A stretch of 64,000 nt of DNA, taken from NCBI GenBank assembly GCA_002269645.1, contig NIVC01001557.1, positions 1 through 64,000 of the forward strand, read 5' to 3'. The position numbers were made by a program, and so were the translations under genes. Numbering within the stretch: position 1 is the stretch's first letter; each line of letters opens with the position of its first letter. This stretch comes from Macrostomum lignano (Eukaryota). Below, piece by piece: positions 25,441-48,379 of this stretch. Below the pieces are notes generated by a model. The model searched no databases, was not told the origin of the DNA, and worked only from the letters and a program-made list of their open reading frames with translations.

Positions 25441-25671
25441 TGATGCAAATTTATAAAGGCAGAAAAATTGGAATCGCAACAATCAGCTACTGATTTGAGC
25501 AACAATTGTTTAAACTCTTAATCTGCAAAAATTTTCAATCAATTTAGACTTTCACAAGACTTGGCCAATTAATATCATTTTTGTAATCTGCATGCAGGGA
25601 GAAATACTTTAATTAAGACACTGTTGCTAATGATTGATTGGGTGTTAATTGGGGTTGGGAAATTTATTTAC

Positions 25672-25902
25672 ATGAGCAAAACTGAACTGCTGAGACTTCT
25701 GATTCGACTCGAAAGATTGCAGCAAACATTTCTGCGGCTCAGCTTTCTGCTTTTTCAATTCAATACTGCAGCTGACTCTGTACAGTTTTGGCGGCTGTGG
25801 CCAGTTTGGCGAAGGAGAAGTGGAGGGGGAAGGAGCAGGTGGCGATGATGAGGCATGACTGGGATGCTGGAATGTTGTGCCGCTATGACTGGGCGGTTTG
25901 GA
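25672..25902 (-). CDS. Candidate Pro/Ser-rich cassette exon (SKPPSHSG...FSFAH)
   Basis: TTTCAG acceptor, GTAAAT donor, phase 0/0, open frame; no homology recognised. Confidence 0.35.
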
Positions 25903-26569
25903 CTGAAACAAAGTTAAGATAAGTCTGCTTTAAGATTCGAAACAACACTGGAACAGTGAATCTCAGCTAGAGATAGACTTTTTAAAGAATTTCTTCTATA
26001 AAAAAGATATGCTTTCTAGGAAAGCGCGCGTATTTAAACAAAAGATAGATTCAAAACTTTCCGTTGCTAGAGAGAGTCAGATATTTATGCGATAAGGCAT
26101 GGATTTTTTAAAACAATCATACCGATAAATTAAAAATACCAAACTTCGTTAAAATGCTTGTTTTGTTACAACGTTGTCAAGTATTTAAATTTAAACTCAA
26201 ACTATTAATTTGCGGGCCGATTAATATACATAAATAAACACCTCTGAATAAAAACAGAAACCACGTCAAACAATATTCAACTCTAAAAAGTTCAAACTTT
26301 TAGGTTTTTTAGAATACTGCAACCAAACACCCAAATATTATAAGGTTATACTTTTATAGATACCTTTGACTGCGCGTCTTCCATCTGCAATAATAAGTTT
26401 TTTTAAGCACAGCAATAAAACTTTGCTTCTCAAACCTTAAATAAGATTGAAAATAGTACACTTTAAAAATCCATGCTTTGAGCAATACAGAAAGATGCTA
26501 GAAAGATGCGGTTAAATGCATCAAATATTTAATTTTAGAAACGTAAAGCATGCTCACTTTTTTAATTAA

Positions 26570-29290
26570 CTGATGGATTGCTAATCTGTCCCATCAGGGA
26601 TGGAGGAAGAGAAAGAATGGATTGCTAATCTAGCCAATCAGGGATGGAGGAATAGAATGGAGTGGATTGCTAATCTGTCCTATCAGGGATGGAGGAAGAG
26701 AAAGAATGGATTGCTAATCTAGCCAATTAGGGATGGAGGAATAGAATGGAGTGGATTGCTAATCTGTCCTATCAGGGATGGAGGAAGAAAAAGAATGGAT
26801 TGCTAATCTAGCCAATTAGGGATGGAGGAATAGAATGGAGTGGATTGCTAATCTGTCCTATCAGGGATGGAGGAAGAAAAAGAATGGATTGCTAATCTAG
26901 CCAATCAGGGATGGAGGAATAGAATGGAGTGGATTGCTAATCTGTCCTATCAGGGATGGAGGAAGAGAAAGAATGGATTGCTAATCTAGCCAATCAGGGA
27001 TGGAGGAATAGAATGGAGTGGATTGCTAATCTAGCCAATCAGGGACATTGAAATACAATGGAGTGGATTGCTAATCTAGCCAATCAGGGATGGAGGAATA
27101 CAATGGAGTGGATTGCTAATCTAGCCAATCAGGGATGGAGGAAGAGAAAGAATGGATTGCTAATCTAGCCAATCAGGGATGGAGGAATAGAATGGAGTGG
27201 ATTGCTAATCTAGCCAATCAGGGACATTGAAATACAATGGAGTGGATTGCTAATCTGTCCTATCAGGGATGGAGGAGTACAATGGAGTGGATTGCTAATC
27301 TAGCCAATCAGGGATGGAGGAATACAATGGAGTGGATTGCTAATCTAGCCAATCAGGGATGGAGGAATACAATGGAGTGGATTGCTAATCTAGCCAATCA
27401 GGGATGGAGGAATAGAATGGAGTGGATTGCTAATCTAGCCAATCAGGGACATTGAAATACAATGGAGTGGATTGCTAATCTAGCCAATCAGGGATGGAGG
27501 AGTACAATGGAGTGGATTGCTAATCTAGCCAATCAGGGATGGAGGAGTACAATGGAGTGGATTGCTAATCTAGCCAATCAGGGATGGAGGAATACAATGG
27601 AGTGGATTGCTAATCTAGCCAATCAGGGATGGAGGAATAGAATGGAGTGGATTGCTAATCTAGCCAATCAGGAACGGAGGAAGAGAAAGAATGGATTGCT
27701 AATCTAGCCAATCAGGGATGGAGGAGTACAATGGAGTGGATTGCTAATCTAGCCAATCAGGGATGGAGGAGTACAATGGAGTGGATTGCTAATCTAGCCA
27801 ATCAGGGATGGAGGAGTACAATGGAGTGGATTGCTAATCTAGCCAATCAGGGATAGAGGAATACAATGGAGTGGATTGCTAATCTAGCCAATCAGCGATG
27901 GAGGAATACAATAGAGTGGATTGCTAATCTAGCCAATCAGGGATGGAGGAATAGAATGGAGTGGATTGCTAATCTAGCCAATCAGGGATGGAGGAATACA
28001 ATGGAGTGGATTGCTAATCTAGCCAATCAGGGATGGAGGAATACAATGGAGTGGATTGCTAATCTAGCCAATCAGGGATGGAGGAGTACAATGGAGTGGA
28101 CTGCTAATCTAGCCAATCAGGGATGGAGGAATACAATAGAGTGGATTGCTAATCTAGCCAATCAGGGATAGAGGAATAGAATGGAGTGGACTGCTAATCT
28201 AGCCAATCAGGGATGGAGGAATACAATGGAGTGGATTGCTAATCTAGCCAATCAGGGATGGAGGAATACAATGGAGTGGACTGCTAATCTAGCCAATCAG
28301 GGATGGAGGAATAGAATGGAGTGGACTGCTAATCTAGCCAATCAGGGATGGAGGAATACAATGGAGTGGACTGCTAATCTAGCCAATTAGAGATGGAGGA
28401 ATAGAATGGAGTGGATTGCTAATCTAGCCAATCAGGGATGGAGGAATAGAATGGAGTGGATTGCTAATCTAGCCAATCAGGGATGGAGGAATAGAATGGA
28501 GTGGATTGCTAATCTAGCCAATCAGGGATGGAGGAATACAATGGAGTGGATTGCTAATCTAGCCAATCAGGGATGGAGGAATACAATGGAGTGGACTGCT
28601 AATCTAGCCAATCAGGGATGGAGGAATAGAATAGAGTGGATTGCTAATCTAGCCAATCAGGGATGGAGGAATAGAATGGAGTGGACTGCTAATCTAGCCA
28701 ATCAGGGATGGAGGAATACAATGGAGTGGATTGCTAATCTAGCCAATCAGGGATGGAGGAATACAATGGAGTGGACTGCTAATCTAGCCAATCAGGGATG
28801 GAGGAATACAATGGAGTGGATTGCTAATCTAGCCAATCAGGGATGGAGGAATAGAATGGAGTGGATTGCTAATCTAGCCAATCAGGGATGGAGGAATAGA
28901 ATGGAGTGGATTGCTAATCTAGCCAATCAGGGATGGAGGAATAGAATGGAGTGGATTGCTAATCTAGCCAATCAGGATGGAGGAATAGAATGGAGTGGAT
29001 TGCTAATCTAGCCAATCAGGGATGGAGGAATACAATGGAGTGGATTGCTAATCTAGCCAATCAGGGATGGAGGAATACAATGGAGTGGATTGCTAATCTA
29101 GCCAATCAGGGACATTGAAATACAATGGAGTGGATTGCTAATCTAGCCAATCAGGGATGGAGGAATACAATGGAGTGGACTGCTAATCTAGCCAATCAGG
29201 GATGGAGGAATAGAATGGAGTGGATTGCTAATCTAGCCAATTAGGGATGGAGGAATACAATGGAGTGGACTGCTAATCTAGCCAATCAGG
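26570..29290. repeat. 45-bp satellite, ~60 units, most containing AGCCAATCAG
   Basis: Unit ATGGAGTGGATTGCTAATCTAGCCAATCAGGGATGGAGGAATACA. Confidence 0.97.
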
Positions 29291-29463
29291 GGTCAAGAAT
29301 TCAGGGATGCAGAACTTGACCATTCCCAAGATGGGGCGAACCTCGCAAGTCGCAAGCCAAAAAACAACACAACCGGACCTCAGCTCATGCTCTCTTCCAA
29401 GCCATGCAGCAATGAGCACGGCAACGCGGCAAGACCATAAAAACGAATTCTGCACTGCGCCAC

Positions 29464-29495
29464 CTGCAGTAGAGCGACATCCAACTGAGAGCAAC

Positions 29496-29534
<39 letters not shown>

Positions 29535-29805
29535 AGGCGGCTCCAGCTCGGAGCTCCCTGCGAACGGCGAACGCGGCGAAAGGCATCGGCGGCGACAATA
29601 GCAGATTCGCCGAGGCCGCAGATACGCAGTCGGTGGAGGTGTCGGCACCGATGGAGGACACTGTGGTGCAGCTGGACTCGTCATCGAGGTCAGAGCTCAA
29701 GGGCTCCTCCGACAAGGTGCCCAGGCGGGCATCGGGTTGAGCAGACCTCATCGAAGACGATCGAGAAGTCGGTCTCACCGTGCCGAATGTGGCAAAGAAT
29801 TCCAT
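29464..29805 (-). CDS. Candidate Ser-rich exon or internal alternative first exon (MEFFATFG...SSSSSSSSSSSSGCSQLDVALLQ)
   Basis: GC-rich ORF 29380-29949 with a CAG/CTG triplet tract; phase-0 donor CAG|GTGGCG at 29464; no phase-0 acceptor found, so the start is uncertain. Confidence 0.45.
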
Positions 29806-30176
29806 TCTACTGTCGGAGCAGTCGGTGCAGCCGCAAGCTCCCGGGTTCGAGTCCTCCTCGTGGCTGCAGGTCAAATCGTAAGCCGAGGGCTCGCGGAGCA
29901 GCACTGAGCAGCAGGGCTTCACGAGTTTTGGCAATTTTAAAGAGTGCACCGAGTTGATTTTTGGTGAGACGGGATTTTTAGTTTATAGGAATTAAATAAA
30001 AAGGCTGCATCAAGCTACTTATTGAAAAGTAGTGTAAAAGCGCATTATAAATTTGTTTGAGAGTCTAGATTGTTATGCAAAATTACATGTAAAACTTGTG
30101 TTTGTGAAACTTTTACCAATTTTAAGAAACGGTGAATTAAATATTATTTGACCCATCATCATACGAATTTGCTCAC

Positions 30177-30283
30177 CTGCTCCAGCAACTTCGGCTTCTT
30201 TTTTGAGCCCTCGGGATAGGCCTTGAGGAACTGGGCCACGTAGGTCATAATGGACTTCTCGTCCGGCTTGTCCACGTCAACGT
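30177..30283 (-). CDS. SYNE1: Nesprin-like exon: end of CH2 (DVDVDKPDEKSIMTYVAQFLKAYPE...LLEQ)
   Basis: KPDEKSIMTYVAQF signature; phase 1/0. Confidence 0.95.
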
Positions 30284-30329
30284 CTGCGAAGTTTGTTTAT
30301 TTTTAATTGATAAAATTGATCTTTCCGAC

Positions 30330-30960
30330 TTTTTAATCTCACTTTCTATCACCCCTTCACCCTGCAGAATCTCATCATTCACCATTCAGGATCTCACCCT
30401 CATCCAACAGGATCTCACCCTTCACTCTACAGAATCTCACCATTCACCCTATAGAATCTCACCCTCACCCTACAGAATCTCCCCCTTCACCCTACAGAAT
30501 CTCACCCTTCACGCTACAGAATCTCACCATTCACCCTATAGAATCTCACCCTTCACGCTACAGAATCTCACCATTCACCCTATAGAATTTCACCCTTCAC
30601 CCTACAGAATCTCACCATTCACCCTATAGAATCTCACCATTCACCCTATAGAATCTCACCCTTCACGCTACAGAATCTCACCATTCACCCTATAGAATCT
30701 CACCCTTCACGCTACAGAATCTCACCATTCACCCTATAGAATCTCACCATTCACGCTACAGAATCTCACCATTCACCCTATAGAATCTCACCATTCACAC
30801 TATAGAATCTCACCCTTCACGCTACAGAATCTCACCATTCACCCTATAGAATCTCACCCTTCACGCTACAGAATCTCACCATTCACCCTATAGAATCTCA
30901 CCATTCACACTATAGAATCTCACCCTTCACCATTTATAATCTCACTCTTCACCCTGGCCT
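30330..30960. repeat. 22-bp minisatellite (TACAGAATCTCACCCTTCACGC)
   Basis: Tandem copies; the minus strand carries GGTGAGAT. Confidence 0.95.
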
Positions 30961-31126
30961 ACAGGATCTCGCCTCTCTTGACCCTGGAGAATTTCACCTG
31001 AACAGTACAATCTCACCCCTTAGCACTTGAGAATCTCACCCCTTAACACCAGAGAGTCTCATCCCTTGAAAATGCACCTATCTACCAACCTACATCAACA
31101 CCCCAAAAAACCTGCTTAAACCTCAC

Positions 31127-31448
31127 CCTCAGGATCAATGAGCCGCGGAATGTTCAGCCCGGACTCGGCGGCAGCGAAGGCGGCCTCGAGGTTCTCGCGG
31201 TTGGTCCTGTCGCCCAGCTTCTCCATGTCCACTAGGCTGGGGTCGATGTTGTGCACCATGGCGTTGAAGGCGGAACCGTCGCGCCAAGAGTTGCCGAAAT
31301 CGCGAATGTCAATGGCGTACTTGTCGCCGAGGTTGTTCTGCGCCCAGGCTAGCAAGGCCTTCTTGGCGGAGCCTTTAAACTTTTCGCCGCGCTCTGCGAG
31401 TTCCGTGCCTTCCAGCGACTTCATGATGGTGTCCTCCTGCTCCTCGAT
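31127..31448 (-). CDS. SYNE1: Nesprin-like exon: CH2 domain (SAKKALLAWAQ...DFGNSWRDGSAFNAMVH...PRLIDPE)
   Basis: CH2 motifs; CAG/GTGAG; phase 0/1. Confidence 0.95.
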
Positions 31449-31599
31449 CTGGGGAAATGCGGCAAGGGTTAGATATGAAGATTAGACAGGGGCGCTGCTG
31501 GGTGGCGGCTGGTCTAGGGGTGAAGCGAGTCGCTCTGTCATTCCAAAGGAACTAGGTTCGAGTCCCGAGTGTGGTCCAGTTTATTTATAGTTACAGAGT

Positions 31600-32110
31600 A
31601 GGCTGGGAAGGCTGTAGAGTAGGGATGGGAAGGCTTTAGAGTAGGGATGGGAAGGCTGTAGTGTAGGGATGAGAAGGCTGTATTGCAGGCATGGGAAGGC
31701 TTAAGAGTAGGGATGGGAAGGTTGTAGAGTAGGGATATGAAGGCTTTAGAGTAGGGATGGGAAGGCTGTAGAGTAGGGATGGGAAGGCTGTAGTGTAGGG
31801 ATGGGAAGGCTGTAGTTTCAGGCTGTAGTGTAGGGATAGGAAAGCTGTATTGCAGGCATGGGAAGGCTTTAGAGTAGGGATAGGAAGGCTTTAGAGTAGG
31901 GATAGGAAGGCTGTAGTGTAGGGAAAGGAAGGCTGTAGAGTAGGGATAGGAAGGCTGTAGTGTAGGGATTGGAAGGCTGTAGAGTAGGGATGGGAAGGCT
32001 GTATTGCAGGCATGGGAAGGCTTTAGAGTAGGGATAGGAAGGCCTTAGAGTAGGTATGGGAAGGCTGTAGTACAGGGGTGGGATGCTGTAGAGTAGAGAC
32101 GGGAGGCTGT
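31600..32110. repeat. 22-bp minisatellite (GGGATGGGAAGGCTGTAGAGTA)
   Basis: Tandem copies. Confidence 0.93.
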
Positions 32111-32933
32111 ACTGCAGGAAAACAGCTTCGCAAAAAGCTTCGCAAAACTGCTACAAAAAGAAATACTGAATCGATTCTGAGGTTTAAAAAACATGTTCTT
32201 CAGATAGCATAGGATGCATAGACAGACGTCAGTCATAGGGCAAACGAAAACTTTGTGGTCTTCATTATTATGCAGAATAATATCAACGAAGGAGTAAAAA
32301 CAGACTTCAGAAGACTCTGGTGGATAAAAATGACGCAAAAAAGTTTACTGGCACCAGAAACTGGAGTAATAACATATTTGTGGCTTTTTCTCCATCCAGT
32401 GTGCAATAAGCGATGACGTAATCGCAATGGAAGGGACAGATAATCAATTACTTGTTACGCAATACTTGCAGCAGACACTATCTATCCATTTGCCAAGGTT
32501 TTCATAGCTCCAGGGTTCCAACACCCTACAGCCTCAGTTTTTAAAACTGTTTCTAACTTTCCACCTTTTCCAGTTTACGTTTTCGTGGATAAACATGGAT
32601 AGGTGAAATTTGCCTCAAATGCCAGGGCAATCCTATACGAATACGGGGGTGTAAAAGCATATAAAATTAACCAACCAATTCCTGAAAGAAAAATAAAATA
32701 AGTTCAGCAATGAAATGTTTTTATCGAGAGTAAAATATATTCTCATAGAACATATTAATGATCAGATTTGAGTAGGTTGTATTACCAATTGGCTCAAGTC
32801 CATGATTGGCTGATCAAGCTGTTCAGGTAATAGTTTATCGAAAGCAATTAGTCAATTATATATTTTAGCTATAATTACAGGTTAATTATTACAGCTGTTA
32901 CAATAAAGAGCGCCGCCACCCCAGTTTGCTCAC

Positions 32934-33026
32934 CTGGAAGTACAGGATAATTGTCCAGATAAGGCCCAGCACAATGGAAGGTTTGCCGTCCACAATGTCG
33001 GCCGGGTTGATGTTGACTAGCTTGAT
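32934..33026 (-). CDS. SYNE1: Nesprin-like exon: end of CH1 ([31 protein letters not shown])
   Basis: Signature [21 protein letters not shown] as in nesprin-1/MSP-300; 93 nt, phase 0/0; not in the ORF track. Confidence 0.95.
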
Positions 33027-33619
33027 CTGCGGCAGGTGAAAATGGTTCGATCTTTATCAGTTCTGCCTGGGCTGAGTTTTATGGCTTAATTATTATTCCC
33101 GGGTGTTAATCGGTTGGTCTAATTATTTCACTAAATGAAAAAGTGGGTCGGCCTTAATGAATTTTGACTCTGCAGCAGTATTGAATTTATACACCTGGGA
33201 TTTAAAGGTATAACTACTTTTGAAAGAACAGGTACGGAAGAATGCATGGAATTTTCGACGATCAAGGCGAATGCTTAAGTGAACAGCAAAAAAGTCGATT
33301 CATTTCGAAACCCAAAAAATGCGCAGATAAATCTTCTGCGCCACAGATTTGTCAGACCCAGCACAGCAGTGAGTCATCAAGATTCAAGAGGGGGGTGATC
33401 AGTGAACTTTTAGGCGAAATTAAATTACCCTTGGTTAATGATAGACACGGGAAGACAAGAGAATAGGCAATTGCATGCATACTAAGTAGATAGATGCAGG
33501 TGCATAAAACAGATTGGTATTGTTAGCTGCAGATATGCAGGTAGATGTAGATAGAAAGGTAGATAGGTAGGTAGATGTAGTCGCTAGATATGATGGTAGC
33601 TATGGGTACTCGTGAGCAG

Positions 33620-33980
<361 letters not shown>

Positions 33981-34859
33981 AATTCTGGCAGCCAATTAGC
34001 TAGCAGACAGGCAGCAGCAGCCAGAGCCTGTGGCCAGAAATATGAGCACACTGGCCATCGCTAACCCGCTATGCGAAGCGCATTCCTCACGTGGCACTCG
34101 GCCCCACACAGCCACCCATTGAGCGATCTACGCACAAAACTCGGCAGTGCAGTCGCTCCAAACAGAATGGCAGAATGGCATATTCTCTCGCCTATAGCGC
34201 CTACGGTCGCCATGGCAACTGCAACTTATTATATATGGGTTTGACAGCTATGCGCTACTATGAGCTGCACTTGAGCTACTGGGCTAGGAAGTCTACGCCA
34301 ACCCCCTGAGACTGGGTGGCGAGCGGGACAGGCAGGTAGTGCTGGCTACCTGAGCTTAGGGGTCTATTAATTTGTCTCTTTCAACTCTGCCTCCGAGTCT
34401 GTCAGCACGGCTCTCACAGCAGGTGATGCGGAGAGAGTTACACCCATCTAGACCTCGGTCTCAGTCTCATTCTCTTTCTCTCTCAGCTCTGTTTTAGAAA
34501 GCAATCTCTTCTTCGTGCCGATGAAGAAGCGAGCCGAGGTGTGTTTGAGAGGCTGTAGAGGCTGGGCCGATGCCAGCGGAAGCGCAAAGTGGCTTCAAAC
34601 TAACAAAAATAACAGCAGAGACGTTTGTGCCGAGAAAAATTGTTAATTAACTTTTGCCGAGACCCTGCCTCTTTAGGGGTAATCTGATATCTAGTTCTCG
34701 AGTCAGTTGATGCGGTTTAAACTGGGCTCAGTTCGCAGTTTGAGTAGAAAATTTATTATAGTACAGCTCAGCGACAGGAAACGTTAGGAGCAAAATGCAG
34801 ATCTATTTTGTAAACTTTCCAGGGATTTCCTTTTCGTTGTTTTTTTCAAAAGTACAATG

Positions 34860-35160
34860 TTGGTAGGTAGGTAGGTAGGTAGGTAGGTAGGTAGGTAGGT
34901 AGGTAGGTAGGTAGGTAAGTAGGTAGGTAGGTAGGTAGGTAAGTAGGTAGGCAGGTAGTTAGGTTGGTAGGTAGGTAGGTAGGTAGGTAGGTAAGTAGGT
35001 AGGTAGGTAGGTAAGTAGGTAGGTAGGTAGGTAGGTAAGTAGGTAGGCAGGTAGTTAGGTAGGTAGGTAGATAGGTAGGTAGGTAGGTAAGTAAGTAAGT
35101 AGGTAGGTAGGTAGGCAGGTAGTTAGGTAGGTAAGTAGGTACGTAGGTAGCCAGGTAGGT
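34860..35160. repeat. (AGGT)n microsatellite
   Basis: Visible in the sequence. Confidence 0.97.
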
Positions 35161-35327
35161 ATGTAGTTTTTCTTTCCGGACTACGGAATCCTCACAAAAT
35201 GCGTCAAAATTGCATGGCGGAAGTAAAAAGTATCAGTAATTTCTAGTACATCTAAGTTCAACAAGAAGACTCAACTCAATATTAATTAATACAGCCCAAA
35301 AGCATACATCTGATGAGTAGGACTCAC

Positions 35328-35569
35328 CTTTTTGCTCTCGAGAAAGCTGAGCGCAGTTCGAACATTGCTGAGGCAGTGCACTCGCTGCATGACTTTTCTC
35401 GACTCGTGCGGCAGCTTCTGGCCAGACAGCACCTCCAGCAGCAGCAGCAGCTTGATGCCGTCCTTGACCTCGGGGAACAAGTCGGCAATCTTGCAGGGCG
35501 GCTGGCACTGGATGAGGTAGGTGTTGATCCAGTTGGTGAAGGTCTTCTTCTGGACGCGCTCCTGCTCAT
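35328..35569 (-). CDS. SYNE1: Nesprin-like exon: CH1 domain (DEQERVQKKTFTNWIN...LEVLSGQKL...NVRTALSFLESKK)
   Basis: Canonical actinin-type CH1 motif QKKTFTxWIN; CAG acceptor (phase 1), GTGAG donor (phase 0). Confidence 0.95.
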
Positions 35570-36348
35570 CTGCGCGAGTTGAGTGAGGAGTTAAAGTCAG
35601 TGCGGCATCAAACGCTCGAAGGGAAGCCGTCAGTCGCTTTCGGAACCGCTTCATAATTGAAGCTTCCGCCAGAAATTCTACACTGTATGGCCGAGCTTCC
35701 GTTCAAAGTCTTTGTTCTAATATATAAGAAATCTGCCCAATTGTGCCATAGCCAGTGACTCAGTCAATGCAGAACTCGCCAGATGAAGCCGGGACTGGAA
35801 GACTGGCTTCGATAATGCGGGGCTGCTGAAGAAGCCAAGGTCAAGGCAGGCTATGGACCTCTCCCCGCTCTTCCCCTCGGTTCCATTTATAACCCAGCCT
35901 AACCCGCAGGATTCCTTCGCTGTACCAGGCAATATTTTTTTCTACTTTGCCAAACGTGCGCGCAGATGCGCAGAGAACCGCCCCCCCCCCCCTAGCAACA
36001 AGGCTGGCTGACTTTCAATGCAGCATCCCGAATAGCAGATGGGGACAGCAGCTTCAGCGGGTTTAGGGGGGAAGCACGTCGGGTCTTCTGCAACCTGGCG
36101 AAGAAAACACCTACTGTGGAATCTTCCCCTATACCAGGTATCTTGCATGGCTTTGGTTCTGCGTACATTTCCTGTAAAGGTGCACACGCTCTTTAGGGTT
36201 GGGGATACAAGTTCCCCCTGGCAATAACTATTGCGTTTGCGGTAGCAATTGACCCTTGCACGGATGTAAGATCTATTTTTAAAGTAGCGGAAGGGTTCGA
36301 AATCCGGAAAAAGTATCACTGAATCAGAGTTAGAAAGGCCGCTTTTAC

Positions 36349-36394
36349 CTCGCAGGTTTTTCACATTGCTCATGAAACTCTGGCGACGTTGCAT
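36349..36394 (-). CDS. SYNE1: Nesprin-like gene, candidate alternative first coding exon E (MQRRQSFMSNVKNLR|D)
   Basis: ATG at 36394; 46 nt, phase 1; ends CTG CGA G|GTAAAA. Confidence 0.6.
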
Positions 36395-37271
36395 TTTTAA
36401 AAATGACGCAGGTGCTTTTTGTAGAAAGATGAAAGTCTAAATTAATACTGGGAAATTGGTAGGGGGTTCAGGAAGATGCACGCACTGACCCCTCGAGTCA
36501 GCGTTTGACTGAGGAGCAACACACCTGTTAGGACCTGATTTACGTTTATTCTAATCTTTATAAATTTATGAGTGTTGACTCCGCTCTCAGTCTCAAACTG
36601 CCACCCTATGAGAAGCTGTTTTCCACAGTTCTTAAACAGTTCTCAAAACTGATCCACTGACCCACCGCTCGCTGTACACAGCAGGTAAGAAAAACTACCT
36701 GCCACCGAGCGAGTTCTCAAACCTCTCTGCCCAAGCGTTCGTCTTTATTATTTCAAACCAAATAATAGGATGGAAAGAAACGGTCTTCAAAGTGAGCGGC
36801 CGAAATAACAAAGTTCGACATTGAATTCGCTGACCTACCAGAGGCTACCAACCACGAGTAGCTTTGTACGAGCTACATAGCTTTGAGCACAGTAGCGCAA
36901 CGAAGTACTCAATAGTTTATTACTATTATTATTGTTCTTATAACTTTCCCGTCTGTCGCCCAATTAGATTTAAGCTCGGTAAAGGTAGAGAAGAGTACTG
37001 AGGTAGTAACTGGGGCAGGTACACACAGCTGCACACACACCCTTGCCGTCCGTGGGTGCGCACACAGGGTGAGTCCAGTCCAGGGACACCTGTATAGCAC
37101 AGCGCAGCTTTCGTTTGTATTTTCTACAGTTGTGGATAGCACACAATTAGCATTAATAAACACCGCGGCATTTGCTTATTTTACTAAATAAAATTTTGCT
37201 TATTTCCTGAGAAACAGATTTTCACATCTTGAGTCTTAGTGAAATAGAATAATACAAAATATAATATTTAC

Positions 37272-37287
37272 CTCTCATCTGCCTGTT
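37272..37287 (-). CDS. Candidate 16-nt micro-exon (NRQMR|D) upstream of CH1
   Basis: Polypyrimidine tract, branch-like CTAAC and TAG acceptor, then AACAGGCAGATGAGAG|GTAAAT; phase 0 in, phase 1 out. Confidence 0.4.
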
Positions 37288-37534
37288 CTATGAAACAGTT
37301 AGAAATTCAGTAAAGAAAAATGCCGCTTGTTTAACAGCAGATTTTATCTAATCTGCACCACACCCAGCAATGAACTCCCGTATGCTAGACGGCGTAGCAC
37401 TGTACTGAGTGAGTTTCCGTACTGGGTTCCCATACCTGTAGCACCGGACTCCGTTAGCCAATAGATTCATCCATACTAAGATATGCGCTCAACATGTTTA
37501 CAATCTAAACGAATTTCCTCTACTGAGCTCTCAC

Positions 37535-38078
37535 ATCGATAAATAACGATGGCGGCATCCATTAAATCTGTGATGTCCTGCGGCTCCTCCGGCAGGCCCG
37601 CTCGATTCAAAACATCGCGCGGCGAAGGCCAGCTAACCTGACGGCGGCTTCTTGGCTCTATCAAGGATGTTTCCTCGGCAGTGTCTACCTGCTGCCTTAC
37701 TAAGGAGTTGCTGGATTGCTTTCTGGTGGAATTCGACAAATGAGACTTGAATTGCCACGGGATCAAGGAACCCTCGGGCACATCCTCGGACTGGTAGATT
37801 GGATTGTACTTCACCTTGAGCGCGCCTAGTCTAGGACGGCTCGATGACACTTCTTGGCCATCGATATCGTCAGGATGTTCAAAATCAGCAGCCTCTGTAA
37901 CCTCCGTAGTGCTGAACGCCTCAAGCCACCTGGCCCGGTGCAACACCAAGTTGTCACTCAACTCGTTGATTGGCAACAATAGCAGCTCATTCTCCTCCTC
38001 AGGTTGCGAAATTCGGTCGTTGATTTCGTAGAAAGCCGGAAAGTTGACGCCATCCGGGTCGGGCTCTTGAGTAGCCAT
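37535..38078 (-). CDS. SYNE1: Nesprin-like gene, candidate long acidic alternative first exon D (MATQEPDPD...KYNPIY...DAAIVIYR|Y)
   Basis: 200-aa non-repetitive ORF 37476-38078; phase-1 donor TAT CGA T|GTGAGA at 37535/37534; 544 nt = 181 codons+1. Confidence 0.6.
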
Positions 38079-40164
38079 GCCTTTGAGTCCTCAGCCTCTG
38101 AGGCACGAGGGTCTTTCTCTATACTCAAACCAAGTTTAAATTAGAAATTTTGTATCTACACAGCCTCTTTTAGCGTATTTTATCGCGGTGGCATTGGAGC
38201 TAGGAGCCAGGTCCTAATTAATAATTTAACCTAAACAGCTCGTATAGCTGAGCCATGCAAGTAGATCGCTTCTGAGACGACTCAGAGCAGTTTCGCTGTA
38301 CAATCTTCAATGACCCACTGTGTACTTGCATTGCGCCAATCTCAAAACCTTCCTGTTTGAGCAGCTTACCTTCCGGAATGGGTTGTCCTCTAGCATAATA
38401 TCTGCCATTCTTTGCCAGTAAATCCAGCATTGCACCTACGACATCTCTCGATGGGGCAAAGAAATGGAACCTATTGCAATTTGCTCCAGTAACCTTGGAT
38501 TTCAGTGTGTTCAACTGCGAATTCTTTAACACTGACGAACAAGAGTCAAGGCTGAGCCAGTCGCATTGTACTTATATGTAAACGCATATCTTATCTCTAA
38601 GTCAAAGATAGTTATGACTAAGCTTGAATTATGCTAATTTTGTGTAACTTGTCTTCTGGTGCACGGGGCAGATTGCTACGGACGATACAGAGCTGAGGCA
38701 ACTGGCGTCCGAGCTCTTATAGTGGAGGCTTTGGCAGTACTTAAAACTCCGCGTTCCCAAGGTAAGCCCGCATAGGTAACTATAAACTTGGATAGGTAAT
38801 AACTGGGATTGCTCAGGTCAAGAGAGCGCATTGGGGGGGGGGGAAGACATTTCTATTCGATGGCATTTTTGCCAGACAAAATGGCGAAAGAGTCAATCTC
38901 TGGCCGGCCCGGCGCGTATTTATAGCAGCAGAGCAAGGCTAAAGTCAACATTGAGCTCACCATTTTATTCAGAGTTATTGACATACTCATAACTTATTGA
39001 GCGCGGCAAAGATTATAAATACTAGCGGGAGAGGTAATGAGTGAAATCAGAAAGAACTGCCTGCAATTTTAAACCTACGTTGGTCAATTCGTTGTTCTGT
39101 AGATCAAGCATTGACATGCAGATAGTGAATTACGATGAGAGAAATGGAAGAGAAATGAAAAATATGCAAATTATTCTACTGCAAGTAGACAGCTCTGAGT
39201 AAGGATTATAAGGAATTTACCTACATAATTCATCCTTTATCAAAGAAAACGCAAAAAAACTATGGGGAAAATTTTATATTCTAAAAGCACTCATTTGTGC
39301 TTTCCATAATTTCTGCACTATAATTGAACAATTAGGAAAAAATTTTCAAAATGCGCAAAGCCTCAAATTGGCCCCGGCAGAAGAAAGATCCATCACGAAG
39401 GCACCGCGTAATCCCACTTTATCATCCAAAGGAGTCAGGAAGTTCAACAATCGGAGAGGTTCAGGTTCAAGAAACACTCCGGAACCTCTAGCTGAATAAT
39501 AACTCAGACTTTTGCATGCCATGCAGAAACACGACTCAAAGTTCCCGGGGTAGGGGGTAGGGCAGAGTTTTTTCAAGTTTGAGAAGTTCAAGCACCTGGT
39601 CTGGCCTTTCTTTCTGTTAGAAAATGGAGCGCCGACATTTCTGGTGTCCCGCGCAGCCTCCAGAGATGCAGTTGATTAACATGCCACTAGAGGAGAACCC
39701 AGTGGCCATAGGCAAGTCAGTAACAATGCTGCTTGTATGTCCTGCGTTGCCTTATCCCCACACATCGACCCGGCTACTTACTGAGCGCACAAAGGCGGTT
39801 TTCCAGCATATAGAAACGGCTGAGTGTTTGCCAACTCTATCTATATTAATACTTCATGCATGAGGAGGAGCCATAGATGGATCCGTGAGTTGAGTAGCAG
39901 CAGCTATTGTTGTTGAACTGGCGCTTTGCTTCGCCCACCCCTGTTCGGAAAAACACGCAACTGAAAATTCCCATTTCACGCTTCTCCCGCTCTCACCTTC
40001 ACTCGCTCACTCACTCACTCACTTGCTACCTGAGTGAACCATCCTGCATGCATGCGCCCGAGGTGAATTTAAACAATTGATGCCTTCGGATGCTTGCCTA
40101 TATGGTTAATAGTTTGGCTATCGTCAATGTACTTCTACAATGTACTTTTGACTACATTGACTAC

Positions 40165-40340
40165 AGAGATCATGAGACATTTAGAATTGGGATCTAAATG
40201 GGATCATGAGACATTCAGAATTAGGATCTAAATGGGATCAGTAGACATTTAGAAGTTGGATCTAAATGGGATCATGAGACATTCAGAATTTGGATCTAAA
40301 TAGGATAATGAGACATTCAGAATTTGGGATCTGGATGGGA
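40165..40340. repeat. ~34-bp tandem repeat (GATCATGAGACATTCAGAATT-GGATCTAAATGG)
   Basis: About 5 degenerate units. Confidence 0.8.
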
Positions 40341-40869
40341 CTAGAATTAGCTAGCTATTGGGATTTCAATAGGATTTCGTTTATTCTCTCAAAACTATCC
40401 TCAGAAAATTTTATAACGGCACCATAAATGTAATAAAGTTTACAAGGCAAATTTAAGCCTTCTCAATCTGGTCACAAAATAGCCTTGGGAAACTTATTGA
40501 ACTAACCCAGCACCTGCAAGACCTGTAACAGTGACCCGGTAGCAATAAACCAGTACAATGCGACTCATAATGCAAGCCAATTTTCCACTTTGCCTGCACT
40601 GCACTGACTACTCACTCAAATTGCTACTTGAAAAAAAACTTCATCATCTCAACACGCTTGCAGAGTTGTTAGCTTAATGACTGAAATAACAGAATTTGCT
40701 ACTTGAGAATTGCCCACAAAGGCAGAGCTGTACTGCCCTAGCAACACATGGGTTAGAGAGAAAATCAGTTTTCCAAAGTAAAATCTGATGATGCATGAAG
40801 CCACCAACTTAAGTTGTCGGCGATATTAAAATTCTGACTTAACTGCACCGACATGGAAAATATGACTTT

Positions 40870-41160
40870 GAGGACCTATGACCTTGAACTTGAGGAACCA
40901 TAGAATCCAGTGACCCTACAAGAAATGACCTCGAAGACCTATGACCTTGAACTTGGGGGACCATAGAATACAGTGATTCTACAAGAAATGACCTTGCCGA
41001 TCTATGACCTTGAACTTGGGGAATCATAGAATACAGTGATTTTATAAAAACTGACCTTAAGGACCTATGACCTTGAACTTGGGGGACCATAAAATCCAGT
41101 GACCCTACAAGAAATGACCTTGAAGATCGATGACCTTGAACTTGGGAAACCATAGAACCC
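40870..41160. repeat. 60-bp tandem repeat just 3' of candidate first exon C
   Basis: About 5 units GACCTTGAACTTGGGG... Confidence 0.88.
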
Positions 41161-41176
41161 AGAAGCCGGTACTCAC

Positions 41177-41279
41177 CTCTGTAGAACAATGCCCTCGACT
41201 CAATTTCTGACCTTCGTTTGTCAATACGCCGCCGACCTCCTGAACTGTCATCTGACGATTCGCGTCTTATCCAACTCAT
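41177..41279 (-). CDS. SYNE1: Nesprin-like gene, candidate alternative first coding exon C (MSWIRRESS...ESRALFYR|D)
   Basis: ATG at 41279; 103 nt, phase 1; ends TAC AGA G|GTGAGT, followed soon after by an intronic 60-bp minisatellite. Confidence 0.7.
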
Positions 41280-42569
41280 GTTCTAGCTGTTCTTCAATAT
41301 ACACCTGCTTGCTGAATCTTAATCTTGTACGTAAATTACTTTAACATTCAAAGCTTTCATTCTGTCAATTAATTCTGCGATGACGTCTCTTGCTGTGAGG
41401 GGTTCCAGCGCTTCAAGTCAGTCTGAGCTATATAACGCAATGGCGCAGTGCAAAAAAAACTTTTTCAAGACTTTTCTTTTTATTTAAGTGAGCGGGAGGA
41501 GGGAGGGAGAGAGAATCGACAGGAAATGGTGGCCGCCGCAATTGGAGGGCCGGGTTGCTGAGCAAGTTTCTGGGGGGCGAAGTGAAAGACCAATAGGGTG
41601 GACCTCTAAACTGTTCTCGATCTTACTTATCTTAAATCAGAGAAATTCTAAGAAATGTAAGGCGCAGCAGCGAGCCGGACTTCCTGCTCTCTGTCTTCTC
41701 ACTCAGTGCTCGGGATTTATTGGTGAGGCAAATTTGGGACGAGGAAATCTACAATATAAAAAAAATTCTATTTTTGGGCGTTCCTGCGCTTGTCTGTCCG
41801 TGTCTGTCTTGCGTTTATACCAGCCTGCCACAAGGGAAATGAAACGATGTAAAAATTGTATAGAAATTGCAAAACCCGCGGTGTACGGTGTGCGCAAATT
41901 CCTGAGATAGTTGCTAAGCTGAGCCCACGTGCGGGTGGGTGAGCGATAGGCCAGTTAAAAAAGGTGGGAGGTAGAGAAGCACAGGACTTAGGATTTTGAA
42001 TCACTATAGCTGGGTTGGTTGCCGAGGGGGTGGAGTTTTGAGTACATTTCCCCTCTGCACTGCCTATCCATGAGTTGCCACAGAGAAGAGTAGCAACTGC
42101 TCATGGCTGTATCTGGGCAACACCCACCCCCGCTCCTCCAAGGTCTTTCCTTCCTCAATGCAAGCCAGGAAAATGGGAACGCATCGGGGTTTAGCTCCCA
42201 GCAACTGCATGACAGATAACCTCCCCGTGCCCCTCCCCGCACACAGAAGTACTCGTACGGAAATGGAATTGGGGACTGCAAGTCACCTGGGAGGTAAGGG
42301 AAGAGCTCATATATACCTTTGGCGAGCCGCTCCTAATTTCTCCTCCTCTCTCAGCTGACGCGTCCACCCCTGCATGCCCCGCCCCGTCCATTTCCGTGAA
42401 TGAGGTCATACTTAGGTCTCGTATAGGTATATATAGTGCTATACTCTGCACCGCTCACTGTGCGGATAATTGCTCGCCTTTCTCCGATTCGTTTACCTGC
42501 CGGGCTGATAAAGAATGAGAAATCCTATTTTATTTTTTATTACTCGTATGTCGAAATCAATGTCCGGCT

Positions 42570-42615
42570 AACTGACTAACTAACTAACTAGCTAACTAAC
42601 TAACTACCTCCCTAC

Positions 42616-42650
<35 letters not shown>

Positions 42651-42771
42651 CCTACCTACCTACCTACCTAACTAACTAACTAACTACCTACCTACCTACC
42701 TAACTAACTAACTAACTACCTACCTACCTACCTAACTAACTAACTAACTACCTACCTACCTACCTACCTAC

Positions 42772-42806
<35 letters not shown>

Positions 42807-42815
42807 CCTACCTAC

Positions 42816-42854
<39 letters not shown>

Positions 42855-42951
42855 CCTAACTAACTAACTAACTACCTCCCTACCTAACTAACTAACTAAC
42901 TAACTACCTACCTACCTACCTACCTAACTAACTAACTAACTAACTACCTAC

Positions 42952-43010
<59 letters not shown>

Positions 43011-43011
43011 G

Positions 43012-43063
<52 letters not shown>

Positions 43064-43064
43064 T

Positions 43065-43100
<36 letters not shown>
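42570..43100. repeat. (CTAA)n/(CTAC)n microsatellite
   Basis: Visible in the sequence. Confidence 0.97.
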
Positions 43101-43103
<3 letters not shown>

Positions 43104-43639
43104 ATAGCTATAACCAACCAACGCTCATTCAATAAATAAAGTATTTAAGAAATAATAACACAAAACGCATCAAAATGCGTTACCTGTCAATCACTAAACA
43201 AAAAGTTTTCATACCATTTTACAAAAGAGAAAGTTCAGCAATGTTCCATATGTAACTCGAAATTGAGCCTAAGCTAGCACAATTCCGTAGTTCATGTGAA
43301 GGCATAATGAATCTGAAGCAACTCAAGTGGTTCGCAAGTGGTCAGAGGGTGTCAATTAATTAAATCACACCCTGACTAAGAATTGCAGTCACACCCCCGA
43401 CTATCTTTCTTCTAATAACTAACTTCAATTTGTTCTATTGTTCGAGTTTTTAGCACTGGTTTGGCCTCAGAAAGTTGAGAGTAATATTTTGATATATATG
43501 AGTTTAAGCATACACGAGTAGAATAGCATTTTTTTTGTTAGTGGCAGTGTGGGGCTATGGCCTATGACCGTTTATGATGGTGGGTAACTAAGTGCTTTAA
43601 GTACTCTTCATACGGTAAAAGTAACTGCACTCCCGCATA

Positions 43640-44360
43640 CCAATCTTGGCACTCCTAGCTCGTCTATCTTGGCATTCCTAGCTCGCCTATCTTGGCACTC
43701 CTAGCTCGCCTATCTTGGCACTCCTAGCTCGCCTATCTTGGCACTCCTAGCTCGCCTATCTTGGCACTCCTAGCTCGCCTATCTTGGCACTCCTAGCTTG
43801 CCTATCTTGGCACTCCTAGCTCGCCTATCTTGGCACTCCTAGCTCGCCTATCTTGGCACTCCTAGCTCGCCTATCTTGGCACTCCTAGCTCGCCTATCTT
43901 GGCACTCCTAGCTCGCCTATCTTGGCACTCCTAGCTTGCCTATCTTGGCACTCCTAGCTCGCCTATCTTGGCACTCCTCGCATGATTATCTTGGCACTCT
44001 TAGCTCGCCTATCTTGGCACTCTCCGCATGCCTATCTTGGAACTCCTTGAATGCCTATCTTGGCACTCCTCACATGCCTATCTTGGTACTCCTCGCATGT
44101 CTATCTTGGCACTCCTCGCTCGCTTATCTTGGACTCGACACTCCTAGCTTGCTTTTCTTGGATTTCTCGCACGCCGATTTTGGCACTCCACGCATGTCTA
44201 TTTTGGCACTCTGCACACATCTATCTTGGCACTCTGCACACATCTATCTTGGCACTCTGTACACATCTATCTTGGCATTCCTTGCACACGCCTATATCTT
44301 GGCACTCTGCACACACTTATCTTGGCACTTTTCGCTCGCCTAATCTTGGCACTCCTCGCT
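43640..44360. repeat. 23-bp minisatellite (TATCTTGGCACTCCTAGCTCGCC), decaying rightwards
   Basis: Tandem copies. Confidence 0.93.
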
Positions 44361-45541
44361 CTTCTTGACACAAAACTGTTGGTAAAAAAGACGAAAAAAT
44401 AGAACAGTTTCTGGTCTTGTTTGCCAGTGCTTCAGTTGTTTCTATAAATAGATGTCTTAGACAGATGACGGAGCAGACATTGATGGATGGATGAGCACTA
44501 CTCCACTACAGTCTTCAGCAAATTCAAAGCATTTCTGCAATTCTGGCAGTCTGAGAAGACAAACAGCTGCAGAGTCAAAGAAGTTAAAAAACTCCAAAAA
44601 AGAATGACAAGGAACTGAAATGCATAGACATCCGGCTTTGCCCTCAACTCAATGGCTAAAGGTTTTTTCATCCAGCCTCAAGCAACGAGTGCGCGTTAAA
44701 AGCTTCTTTAAATACGCACTCCTTAGTCCTAGAGTCCCATTGTCCCTCGCACAGCAGTGTTACAGCACATAAACAATGAGCTATGCATTTGCAATATATT
44801 CAAGGTTAGGTATTTCCCGATACAGCCTATACAGAAGTGTGAGACTGTGAGTGAGTGAATGGGAGCGATCCTGAGTCCCTCCCTTATCATCGCTCCGATG
44901 TCATTCCCAGAGCACTCTCTAGGAGAATTTTGTAAAGCTCTTTATTGTCTAAGCTAAATATGGTTCATCAAACAATCCCTTGCGAACAATCAGAAAGTGA
45001 GCGAAATTCTCGATTTGCGCTACTGATAGTAAAAATGCGAGAAAACTTCGACAAAAAATTGTAACGAAAAAAAAAACACTGCTTTAATTGCGGGGAGACG
45101 GCGTTAAGCTTCTTTGACTTTAATTTTTACTCGAAGGGAAAACCCTTTGATATATAGCACGTGATCAATAATAATCATCAGTTTTGGCACCAATTCAAAT
45201 TGTTTTTTGGTCATCATAAGATCAGTAGATGTTAATTTACGCTTGTAAGTCTACGCATAAGCCATAAGGCATTAAGGTAATAGGTATATGAATTCCTTAG
45301 ATAGTACTCTGAATTCAAATCAATACATAAACTAAAGCCAAAACGAAAATTATATCAAAAACTCGTTAATAATCTTCAAGTAAATTAATTTGAGTCAGCT
45401 GTCTCAGCCTGTGTTTGCACACAAAGTATCGTCACGAATGAATTATTGTACTTTTGCCTCTGGATTTTCTGTACCTATTCAATATAAATAAATAATAAAT
45501 AAATAATTGTACAATTACAAAGCTATATTATAAAGCCTTAC

Positions 45542-45575
45542 CTCTCAATCGGTGATACGCCACTGATACGCTCAT
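45542..45575 (-). CDS. SYNE1: Nesprin-like gene, candidate alternative first coding exon B (MSVSVAYHRLR|D)
   Basis: ATG AGC GTA TCA GTG GCG TAT CAC CGA TTG AGA G|GTAAGG; 34 nt, phase 1; same TTGAGAG|GTAAG end as exon A; too short for the ORF track. Confidence 0.6.
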
Positions 45576-47714
45576 ATCATTAATTGGTTTAGCCCAGAAG
45601 GTCAATATAAAAATAAATCAGTCCAGGAGAAATAGTAACGGTAAACCATGGTCAGAGTTCGTCAAGTGTCGTCTGTGTTGATGGTCAGGAAAAAAATAGA
45701 GTTCCACCTCGAAACGTAGTTGCAATAATTAAAAATAACTTAATTGGCCAATTTAAATGCTCATGCGCAGATTCAGTTCAGGATTTAATTTTAAGCATTT
45801 AATTTAAGCAAATAAGAAGCTAAGAGGTAAAGATTACCAACTCATAAGCCAGCTAAGTGCAATAGGAAGTAGCTAAGAAAACTTCGTCTCAGGTCAGGAA
45901 GTTGAAGAAGCAAGTTAAAATGCAGATTGGTTTCAAAGTAGCAAGGTCGAGTGTACTTGTAAAAAAGTAAACAATCTATATAAATTAATCAATTGTTTGC
46001 TCGCTGCTAAATAACAAAAAACACCCTGACTCTCCTCTTAATTCAGCACTGTTTTGGAATAAATTCAGTAAGAGTTTGTTGGTTGCACGCCTAATATTAT
46101 ATTATAGGTTGGTTGGTCCGGGGTTTGTGTTGCAGTTTCAGTTCAAGTTCAGTTGTATAGCCCAGGGGGGGACAGCTTTGAGGAGGCGGGGTGGGGTGGT
46201 TGGTCTGGGGGGCGCCGTCTCTCGCATATAATTTCACATTACTAAACACGCACAGCGGGGGGAGCCCAATCGGTTTACAGGCCTTTCCTTATTCTGAACT
46301 GAAGCCCTATTACTTTTTTTTTAAACCGATTTGGGGGACTTGGTGAGGAGACCAAGCCCCCCCCTCCTCCAATACGTGCGTAGGAAATAAGGGTTTGTTC
46401 GGGGGTTTCGGAATTGGGGGTGGACTGTTGGGGAAAAGCCCTGAACCCTCCCCAAGAGAAAGTCAATGTAGATACTATAAACGGTTCTTTATTATTAGGT
46501 AGGGCCCTATTTTTAAATGTACATACGAAATCAGTAGATAAAGTACGGAAAACATTACACGTTACGGTAATGCGCTTTTTTGTGGGGCTGGAGTGCCAAA
46601 CTTTGCCAAAATTTGCCAAACATGAGGAAAAGCTCGTAGAAAATCCCTATAAATTTCGGAATATGAGGAATACGTTTGATTGATAAGGTTGTATTCTTAT
46701 CGGCGTAGGGAAGGGCTAATAATAGGTTTTCATGATTCGTTCTTTATTCCGGTCCGGGGGGGGGGGGCTTGAGTGAACTCAATACTCAAGCATAGGCTTC
46801 CAGTAAACTGTCTTTGTCAATTTCCTACTTAAGGACAACGCTTTGTAGGAACTCAAGGTCAAGGTCGGATTTAGGGTTGCGACTTGTGGAGGTGGGTCAC
46901 AGTTTCAGAACAAAGTGCTTTCAAGAGTAGTGTGGAGTGAGTCGTGACTCAATAGAGTCAATATTACGACGTAAAGCTCCACTCAAGCCCGCTTAAATAA
47001 ATGCGATTCTCCCACGGCCAACCCATCCAGCTTCTACTGTAGAATAGAACTGCTTGGGAGCCAATTCGCATTGTACTAGCTATTTTAGCGCATAAATTAT
47101 GTTTACGCGAAAAATAAGCGCTGGACATGTACAGGACTATAGAATCCGTCTTCTTGCCATGCGCATGAGATTTCCAGTCTGATAATAGCATAGGTGTTCC
47201 GAAATTTAGTTTAGCTTTTCGCTTTTACTATTTAAACAGTTTAACAAGTCAATCAACATTATTTTAAGTCAGGTATTAACTATGAATTTGAATTGAGGGG
47301 TTTTGATCATGGCTACAGTTAAAAGTTAAATATTTAAAAAAATAATATGTTAAGCCGATACTCGCTACTACCTAACCAGTAGTCCCATGTAGTACGAGCA
47401 ATGTACGTATTAGAGAATTGTAAACCATGCATGAGTCAGCTGTTTTTGGGAGTCTCGATCTCTTTACACGTGTGTGTAAAATTGACAGTTAATGTATATT
47501 ACGCAGTACCTGTACTACCCAGTATACCCGCATATATCCCAGATACATGTACTGTAAATGCAAAGTACAGGTTGATCAGGTAACAGTTCAGTTGTACATG
47601 ATTTGTCCAGAGCACATTACATTTACAGTTTCAGTAAAGTACATCAGGTCACAGTACACTACCCGAATACAGGACAAGTACATGTGTACCTGTACAGGAT
47701 TGCCTAATACATTA

Positions 47715-48160
47715 CATGATTACCCAAACACAGTACAGGATTACCCAAACACAGTACAGGATTACCCAAACACAGTACAGGATTACCCAAACATAGTACA
47801 GGATTACCCAAACACAGTACAGGATTACCCAAACACAATACAGGATTACCCAAACACAGTACAGGATTACCCAAACACAGTACAGGATTACCCAAACACA
47901 GTACAGGATTACGCAAACACAGTACAGGATTACCCAAACACAGTACAGGATTACCCAAACATAGTACAGGATTACCCAAACACAGTACAGGATTACCCAA
48001 ACACAGTACAGGATTACCCAAACACAGTACAGGATTACCCAAACACAGTACAGGATTACCCAAACACAGTACAGGATTACCCAAACACAGTACAGGATTA
48101 CCCAAACACAGTACAGGATTACCCAAACACAGTACAGGATTACCCAAACACAGTACAGGA
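47715..48160. repeat. 21-bp minisatellite (GGATTACCCAAACACAGTACA) just 3' of candidate first exon A
   Basis: About 21 near-perfect units. Confidence 0.96.
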
Positions 48161-48201
48161 TGAAATCGCATCCAAAAGCTGCCAAGGATCGGGCGACTTA
48201 C

Positions 48202-48379
48202 CTCTCAAACTGGCCGTCTTTCCGCCAACACCCCTAGCAGACGATAGCAACTGAGGACCCGGTCCCGCGCTACTTGTTGCAGCATTGCTGCCGGCGCTGC
48301 TGCTACTAGGAGAAGCGCCAGTTGTTGTTGGCTTCAAACTGAATCGCCTGATATTGCTGCTGCCGCTGTTGGATGCCAT
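48202..48379 (-). CDS. SYNE1: Nesprin-like gene, candidate alternative first coding exon A (MASNSGSS...GGKTASLR|D)
   Basis: ATG at 48379; 178 nt = 59 codons+1; ends TTG AGA G|GTAAGT (consensus donor); phase 1 matches the CH1 exon acceptor at 35569. Confidence 0.7.

Follow-up and report, generated by a model that had tools for sequence, protein, structure and literature searches.

Probable alternative coding first exons feeding one CH1 exon in a nesprin-type gene of the flatworm Macrostomum lignano

A nesprin-type gene and five upstream segments

The window analysed here, 64,000 nucleotides (nt) in length, is the first 64 kb of contig NIVC01001557.1 (assembly GCA_002269645.1) of the flatworm Macrostomum lignano, with which it is identical, and its minus strand carries the 5' part of a nesprin-type gene. 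The subject of this study is a set of five candidate first exons, A to E, that lie upstream of the exon with which the actin-binding domain of this gene begins, the CH1 exon (Table 1). The locus fetched via the annotated protein P0161 (L002) matches window positions 46394..1 at 100%, and the same CH1 exon is common to the gene models A0A1I8HKJ9 (P0001) and PAA66447 (P0161). Because an upstream gene for a ubiquitin-conjugating enzyme (UBC, E2) has its stop at ~51424, the 5' region of the nesprin gene is limited to ~35.6-51.4 kb.

Judged from its sequence, the gene is of the nesprin type. Its four CH exons encode a 255-aa tandem-CH domain with 56-63% identity to the nesprin-1 actin-binding domains of molluscs, cestodes and vertebrates, whereas the actin-binding domains of spectrin, plectin and calmin score below the nesprin-1 type, and those of plectin and MACF1 reach 47% identity as against up to 63% for nesprin-type domains. 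A 1537-aa query matched nesprin-1 proteins over ~50% of its length. Pfam PF00307 (CH) is recorded on P0161, and the precomputed Pfam lists of P0161 and P0162 contain PF25034 (Spectrin_SYNE1) and PF00435 after the actin-binding domain. With nesprin-1 proteins as best matches and this combination of CH and Spectrin_SYNE1 domains, the identity proposed in the first-pass annotation, which had been made from the letters of the window, is borne out. Membership of the plakin/spectraplakin family was considered and rejected, given that the closest homologs are nesprin-1, that Spectrin_SYNE1 lies downstream and that identity to plectin/MACF1 is just 47%; the precomputed Pfam lists contain no plakin-family match for the sequence downstream of the actin-binding domain.

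Table 1 Exons and candidate exons of the nesprin-type gene in the window and of its paralog. A slash marks an exon boundary; primes mark paralog exons.
Feature	Locus	Position	Strand	Length	Sequence features	Remark
Candidate first exon A	window	48379-48202	minus	59 codons + 1 nt (178 nt)	MASNSG...KTASLR G/GTAAGT	unverified
Candidate first exon B	window	45575-45542	minus	11 codons + 1 nt (34 nt)	MSVSVAYHRLR G/GTAAGG	unverified
Alternative first exon C (probable)	window	41279-41177	minus	34 codons + 1 nt (103 nt)	MSWIRRESS...ESRALFYR G/GTGAGT	
Alternative first exon D (probable)	window	38078-37535	minus	181 codons + 1 nt (544 nt)	MATQEP...DITDLMDAAIVIYR T/GTGAGA	
Alternative first exon E (probable)	window	36394-36349	minus	15 codons + 1 nt (46 nt)	MQRRQSFMSNVKNLR G/GTAAAA	annotated start of the coding sequence
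Common CH1 exon	window	35569-35328	minus		phase-1 acceptor cgcgcag/AT GAG CAG; encodes (D)EQERVQKKTFTNWIN...SFLESKK; GTGAGT follows	
Rest of tandem CH actin-binding domain	window	33026-32934, 31448-31127, 30283-30177	minus			spliced mapping of P0161 onto the window
Paralog C'	L004	7664-7742		79 nt (3n+1)	MQPHWLAKQQQEGSTSLVEARALFYR G/GTGAGA	
Paralog D'	L001	8699-9233		178 codons + 1 nt	open reading frame from ATG, ...DITDVIDAAIVIFR T/GTAAGA	between C' and E'
Paralog E'	L001	10001-10043			MRRSSLMTNVKSLR G/GTATCA	

All five minus-strand segments have the properties that had been claimed for them: each starts with ATG, is open, is 3n+1 nt long and ends in an Arg codon plus 1 nt before GT (SLR, RLR, FYR, IYR and NLR in A to E). 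The phase-1 acceptor of the CH1 exon (x/AT GAG CAG) at 35569 is likewise present. Since each upstream exon stops 1 nt into a codon, direct in-frame splicing to CH1 is possible for any of them; the last exon base of D is T, so that its junction codon would be TAT (Tyr) instead of GAT (Asp).

How often such a pattern arises by chance was assessed for the whole set on the minus strand from the CH1 acceptor to the stop of the upstream gene (35570-51400), counting phase-1, ATG-open segments with a donor score ≥4 and a hydrophobic-Arg end. The number of phase-1 ATG-open segments with a passable donor, 31, was about as simulated. Six of these 31 end in hydrophobic-Arg, against 0.48 expected in first-order Markov simulations (P(≥4) = 0.003), and the same criterion gave 0-1 segments in each of five control phase/strand combinations. 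The hydrophobic-Arg criterion was chosen after the data had been seen, and the real test is therefore the external evidence. The sixth segment, beyond A to E, is a 7-nt stretch (ATGAGAG/GTAAAT, 37278-37272, minus) that we regard as trivial. It is preceded by a good-looking acceptor (ttcatagaacaggcag/), and it begins in a way similar to the CH1 exon (cag/ATGAGCAGG); MR/DEQE would result from its use as a first exon, a broken frame from its use as an internal one.

A start codon supplied at the CH1 acceptor by a spliced leader was also considered and rejected, because an ATG directly before 35569 gives the wrong frame. Spliced leaders ending in ATG exist, and trans-splicing in M. lignano could also supply 5' ends.

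Annotation and conservation of exons C, D and E

Two ATG-bearing exons are annotated directly on the same CH1 exon in gene models. GenBank PAA66447 (BOX15_Mlig015905g1), annotated on NIVC01001557.1 with a coding sequence at window positions 36394..2901, has the N-terminus MQRRQSFMSNVKNLR/DEQERVQKK, which is E joined to CH1. UniProt/UniRef A0A1I8HKJ9, from another annotation set, begins MSWIRR...ALFYR/DEQERVQKK and corresponds to exon C joined to CH1.

A second M. lignano nesprin gene, a paralog with 56% protein identity, is present in two copies, L001 (NIVC01001422.1) and L004 (NIVC01001808.1). Its introns are not alignable with the window, and in the whole 5' region the only DNA that aligns between the paralogs consists of the tails and donors of C (38 nt) and D (49 nt). 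Upstream of the paralog CH1 exon lie C', D' and E', with the order, ATG, phase 1 and tail of the window exons all kept. The tail of C, E[S/A]RALFYR, is kept together with its donor. D and D' have in common the tail ...DAAIVI[Y/F]R, the unusual final T and an internal motif (LVLHRARWLEAFS in D, LALFQASWLNAFA in D'); the local alignment of D with D' scores 5 standard deviations above shuffles (z=5). The UniRef paralog model A0A1I8GVC4 contains ...AAIVIFR/YEQERVQKK, that is, D' joined to CH1, and the paralog proteins PAA68132, PAA63878 and A0A1I8GMD0 begin MRRSSLMTNVKSLR/DEQERVQKK.

A close homeolog of the window, L003 (contig NIVC01000160.1), is ~96% identical to it over the aligned stretch; the locus ends ~20 nt short of exon C, and the homeolog comparison covers D and E. 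Exon E is identical in the two. Exon D differs by no indels (2.3 expected), and three of its eight substitutions are nonsynonymous, as against the 78% expected (P=0.017).

Taken together, annotation and conservation in paralog and homeolog indicate a function as coding exons for C, D and E, each starting a frame into CH1. We consider it probable that at least these three alternative coding first exons (C 34 aa, D 181 aa, E 15 aa) feed the common CH1 exon, with A (59 aa) and B (11 aa) fitting the pattern as unproven members. The array of first exons onto one actin-binding domain that the first-pass annotation had put forward thus stands for C and E, through annotated models, and for D, through conservation in the paralog; for A and B it is the pattern that speaks.

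In the arrangement we propose, the common CH1 exon with its phase-1 acceptor would take any one of several ATG-bearing upstream exons in frame, and the resulting isoforms would differ only in the peptide before CH1. At the end of each first exon the residues, hydrophobic and then Arg, would be constrained, and they are predicted to form an N-terminal extension of the first CH1 helix. The choice of first exon would lie with separate promoters, and the variable peptide may alter actin affinity and/or subcellular targeting, by analogy with plectin.

Several observations were made on the paralog copies themselves. The C-type exon of L001 (7682-7744), compared with that of L004 (7664-7742), is without 16 nt (GCGCTCTTCTACCGAG) at its end; this loss removes ALFYR and shifts phase 1 to 0, so no C-type isoform would come from the L001 copy, unless the difference is an assembly error. 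The paralog 5' region (C', D', E', CH1) is found twice and inverted on NIVC01001808.1, at L004 6595-10400 (+) and 19069-15270 (-), with ~97% identity to L001; this is a genuine inverted duplication or else a palindrome created by the assembly. The paralog segment p8172, at one point taken by eye for a counterpart of C, was rejected (p=0.6), the true counterpart being that at L004 7664-7742.

Weighing the members of the array

That E is the sole real start, with C a model artefact, D an orphan open reading frame in the first intron and the shared ending a coincidence, is very improbable. The transcriptome-derived GenBank annotation does have E in all three annotated copies, and C is backed by a single computed model whose evidence basis is unclear. 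Against this, the tails and donors of C and D are precisely the 5'-region DNA that the paralogs have conserved, order, ATG, phase and tail are all retained in C', D' and E', synonymous changes are in excess in D between homeologs, and the count of segments with the pattern lies far above the simulations. A stronger competitor holds that the array has three members, C, D and E, and that A and B are ATG...GT segments that arose by chance in the repeat-rich 10-kb upstream region; we give it serious weight, somewhat short of an even chance. With a family-derived motif ([LIVMFYW][RKQ]) applied to the 10 kb upstream of C, the probability of at least two such segments as A and B alone, P(≥2), is 0.08 at a donor score ≥5 and 0.46 at ≥4, and control frames and strands under the same motif hold 0-2. 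Counterparts of A and B were found in neither paralog copy, by tblastn or blastn. The peptide of A, searched together with D by HMMER against 1.84 billion representative proteins, had no real match (the single one consisted of 10 short stretches, E=1.8e-5), and B, with 11 codons, is too short for a search of its own. When A, B, D and E were each fused to the start of CH1 and searched as one concatenated query, distant CH proteins alone came back; this search reaches only proteins of ~0.55-1.75x the query length and missed even P0001, so its outcome is uninformative. Between A and the paralog segment p8172 there is a weak similarity, with p=0.0025 before correction for 20 tests. Another paralog candidate, p3758, is interrupted by a stop codon in the second copy and so demonstrates that chance produces matches of this kind. 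In favour of A and B, on the other hand, stand their near-consensus donors (GAG/GTAAGT and GAG/GTAAGG) and a narrower L-R + G ending as in E; A, moreover, is a 59-codon open frame with an in-frame stop 3 codons upstream of its ATG, and two extra upstream paralog candidates are intact in both copies (p2536, ...NSLR G/GTGAGG, and p8172, ...GFK G/GTGAGA). Exon A also lies downstream of the neighbouring E2 gene, at a position compatible with a most-upstream promoter. On balance A and B may be chance segments, with the pattern as their support in the sequence, and that both are real appears rather unlikely.

Exon D could instead be a cassette exon, phase 1 at both ends, that lies between CH1 and a first exon further upstream (A, B or C), in which case the choice of first exon would be mixed with exon skipping. 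An AG 2 nt before the ATG of D is in phase (aaag/GC ATG) and would give ...FYR-G-MATQEP in frame; an in-phase AG also occurs 5 nt before D' in the paralog, and the sole model with D', A0A1I8GVC4, joins C' to it. We nevertheless find this improbable, for an in-frame stop closely precedes the ATG of D and that of D' (by 4 and 14 codons), the candidate acceptors differ in position between the paralogs and are expected by chance, the stretch before them is not pyrimidine-rich, and A0A1I8GVC4 is unreliable in exactly the C'-D' stretch. The reading of C, D and E as alternative first exons has points of its own against it, gathered here. The junctions of C and D come from computed gene models and conservation, not from reads, and A0A1I8GVC4, which contains D', is over-joined, stringing together p2536, C' and D' in a way that requires an implausibly small intron. 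The donor of D is weaker (GAT/GTGAGA), Tyr replaces the usual Asp at its junction, and with the in-phase AG upstream of its ATG it may serve as an internal exon. The peptides of A and D are in none of the 1.84 billion representative proteins; that exhaustive search found no homolog of D outside Macrostomum, and a Pfam scan of the longer open reading frames in the 5' region gave no match for D. Finally, A and B are without paralog counterparts and are not significant as a pair.

Known systems and the tail before CH1

Isoforms of plectin differ solely in their first-exon peptides, which target separate compartments (PMC4664173). The flatworm locus resembles plectin, as well as dystonin/BPAG1, MACF1 and Drosophila shot, in having short ATG-bearing first exons that would be joined onto one exon starting with CH1, such that isoforms differ only before the actin-binding domain. 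It differs in that the gene is a nesprin, with Spectrin_SYNE1 after the actin-binding domain, and in that targeting by isoform is experimental in plectin, whereas the flatworm locus is known from sequence, with three supported members and five possible ones. Among nesprins, Drosophila Msp300, a nesprin-1 ortholog, has four start exons, of which exons 1 and 3 precede the CH domains (PMC8616381); isoforms that contain the CH domains begin either at exon 1 (H, I, J, K) or at exon 3 (D, L) (PMC8616381; a FlyBase-based description in PMC11230431). Like the flatworm gene as proposed, Msp300 is a nesprin of an invertebrate whose transcription begins at more than one site upstream of the CH domains, the comparison being one of start exons and not of coding content or junction phase, and the fly has two upstream starts against three to five in the flatworm. 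In view of Msp300 (PMC8616381), the earlier suggestion that no such array was known for an invertebrate nesprin was too strong.

Database models of vertebrate nesprin-1 show the same junction (x/EQE.VQKRTF) after at least three unrelated N-terminal classes, all of which end in a hydrophobic residue followed by Q/R/K. These classes are ...DIANVMQRLQ/D in many species, including human-matching sequences; ...SLNLVTGFFQYLR/D in fishes and birds; and MIKTIYKTPGMIK/D in human with MRKTNCKTPGVIK/D in rodents. Two classes, MATSRGASRCPRDIANVMQRLQ/D and MIKTIYKTPGMIK/D, occur among human or human-matching nesprin-1 sequences. The vertebrate peptides differ from the flatworm ones in not being homologous to them beyond the last two or three residues. 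The main survey of nesprin-1 isoforms, by Rajgor et al. 2012, concerns internal promoters downstream of the CH domains (PMC3388047). Our literature search found no paper describing the N-terminal variants of nesprin-1 as an array, and none on nesprin in Macrostomum. The design is not new: it is known in plakins and visible in fly and vertebrate nesprins.

The shared ending of the flatworm exons can be seen in the same light. Among ~120 nesprin-type N-termini that we tabulated, the pair before the junction codon, ahead of [D]EQExVQKKTF, is almost always a hydrophobic residue followed by R/Q/K. Examples of such tails are RLQ, YLR and VIK in vertebrate nesprin-1, SLQ in nesprin-2, LLQ, QIR and SIK in arthropods, QLQ and SLK in molluscs, and ILR in Schistosoma. 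In an AlphaFold2 prediction from an alignment headed by the exon C isoform, one continuous helix runs from residue 15 of exon C (residues 15-34) through helix A of CH1, with a predicted local distance difference test score (pLDDT) of about 91 for residues 15-34 and of 91-92 for residues 21-40. The common [L/Y]-R ending, which the first-pass annotation had read as convergence of otherwise unrelated sequences, is thus above chance as a set, as claimed; it is not independent convergence but a structural constraint, common to nesprins, on a segment predicted to extend helix A of CH1. That the sequence before CH1 can matter for function is suggested by other tandem-CH proteins: in beta-III-spectrin and related proteins this sequence is described as binding actin and setting affinity (PMC8810934; see also PMC6938246 and PMC7688639).

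Several vertebrate nesprin-1 models (P0196, P0238, P0194, P0208, P0014, P0172 and P0278) have Tyr at the junction instead of Asp (.../Y EQE.VQKRTF), which implies an upstream exon ending in T, like D of the flatworm. Some of these models are without a start Met and may be read-through of exons of the 5' untranslated region.

Across bilaterian nesprins, the phase-1 junction and the tail rule seem to be conserved, as far as the compared sequences tell. A wider proposal would make of this an ancient bilaterian docking rule, in which a phase-1 junction before (D)EQExVQKKTF, with a hydrophobic-R/Q/K tail, would permit the swapping of lineage-specific N-termini, the flatworm having the full five-member array with a Macrostomum-specific 180-aa D module and each member tuning actin affinity or targeting; in this full form we think it rather doubtful. 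If the array is confirmed by transcripts, peptide swapping ahead of the actin-binding domain would not be special to plakins. The design would then be common to nesprins from flatworms to vertebrates, at an identical intron position and under an identical constraint on the two final residues, and would offer a concrete way to test how the stretch ahead of CH1 tunes the actin binding or the targeting of LINC-complex proteins (LINC, linker of nucleoskeleton and cytoskeleton), in a flatworm model that regenerates and allows knock-down of single isoforms. Current annotation, with its one start per gene copy, would be corrected as well.

Surroundings of the gene and minor observations

The upstream neighbour on the minus strand (51424-53388) is a two-exon UBC gene whose product has a long extension at its N-terminus (MFEYYLRAPSH...). 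The first large exon, which begins at 53388, contains positions 1-70 of Pfam UQ_con; the remaining domain and the stop are in an exon at ~51726-51424. Between 35000 and 64000 the window is very dense in minisatellites, with units of 17-63 bp in up to 86 copies (for example at 50116-51259, 54407-55795 and 57642-59091). Two of them begin within 15-40 nt on the downstream side of the exon C and exon A donors. The minisatellites yield long spurious open reading frames on both strands (for example 47547-48254 on the plus strand), and a 235-aa plus-strand frame overlapping A was rejected as a gene, being the product of a 21-bp tandem repeat.

At the other end, the 3' (KASH) end of the nesprin gene lies outside the window, and the gene models are truncated, at 1646 aa for P0161 and 1949 aa for P0281. 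The C-terminus of PAA66447 is a short non-homologous tail, and this model is probably truncated. P0161 and P0281 represent near-identical gene copies (window ~30177-24925), yet their annotations diverge after ...KKKPKLLEQ, continuing as VEAAKQAAEQ... in one and IEDAQSKVQAAKQAAEQ... in the other. Judging from these sequences, the divergence suggests an alternative splice site or a small exon directly after the actin-binding domain.

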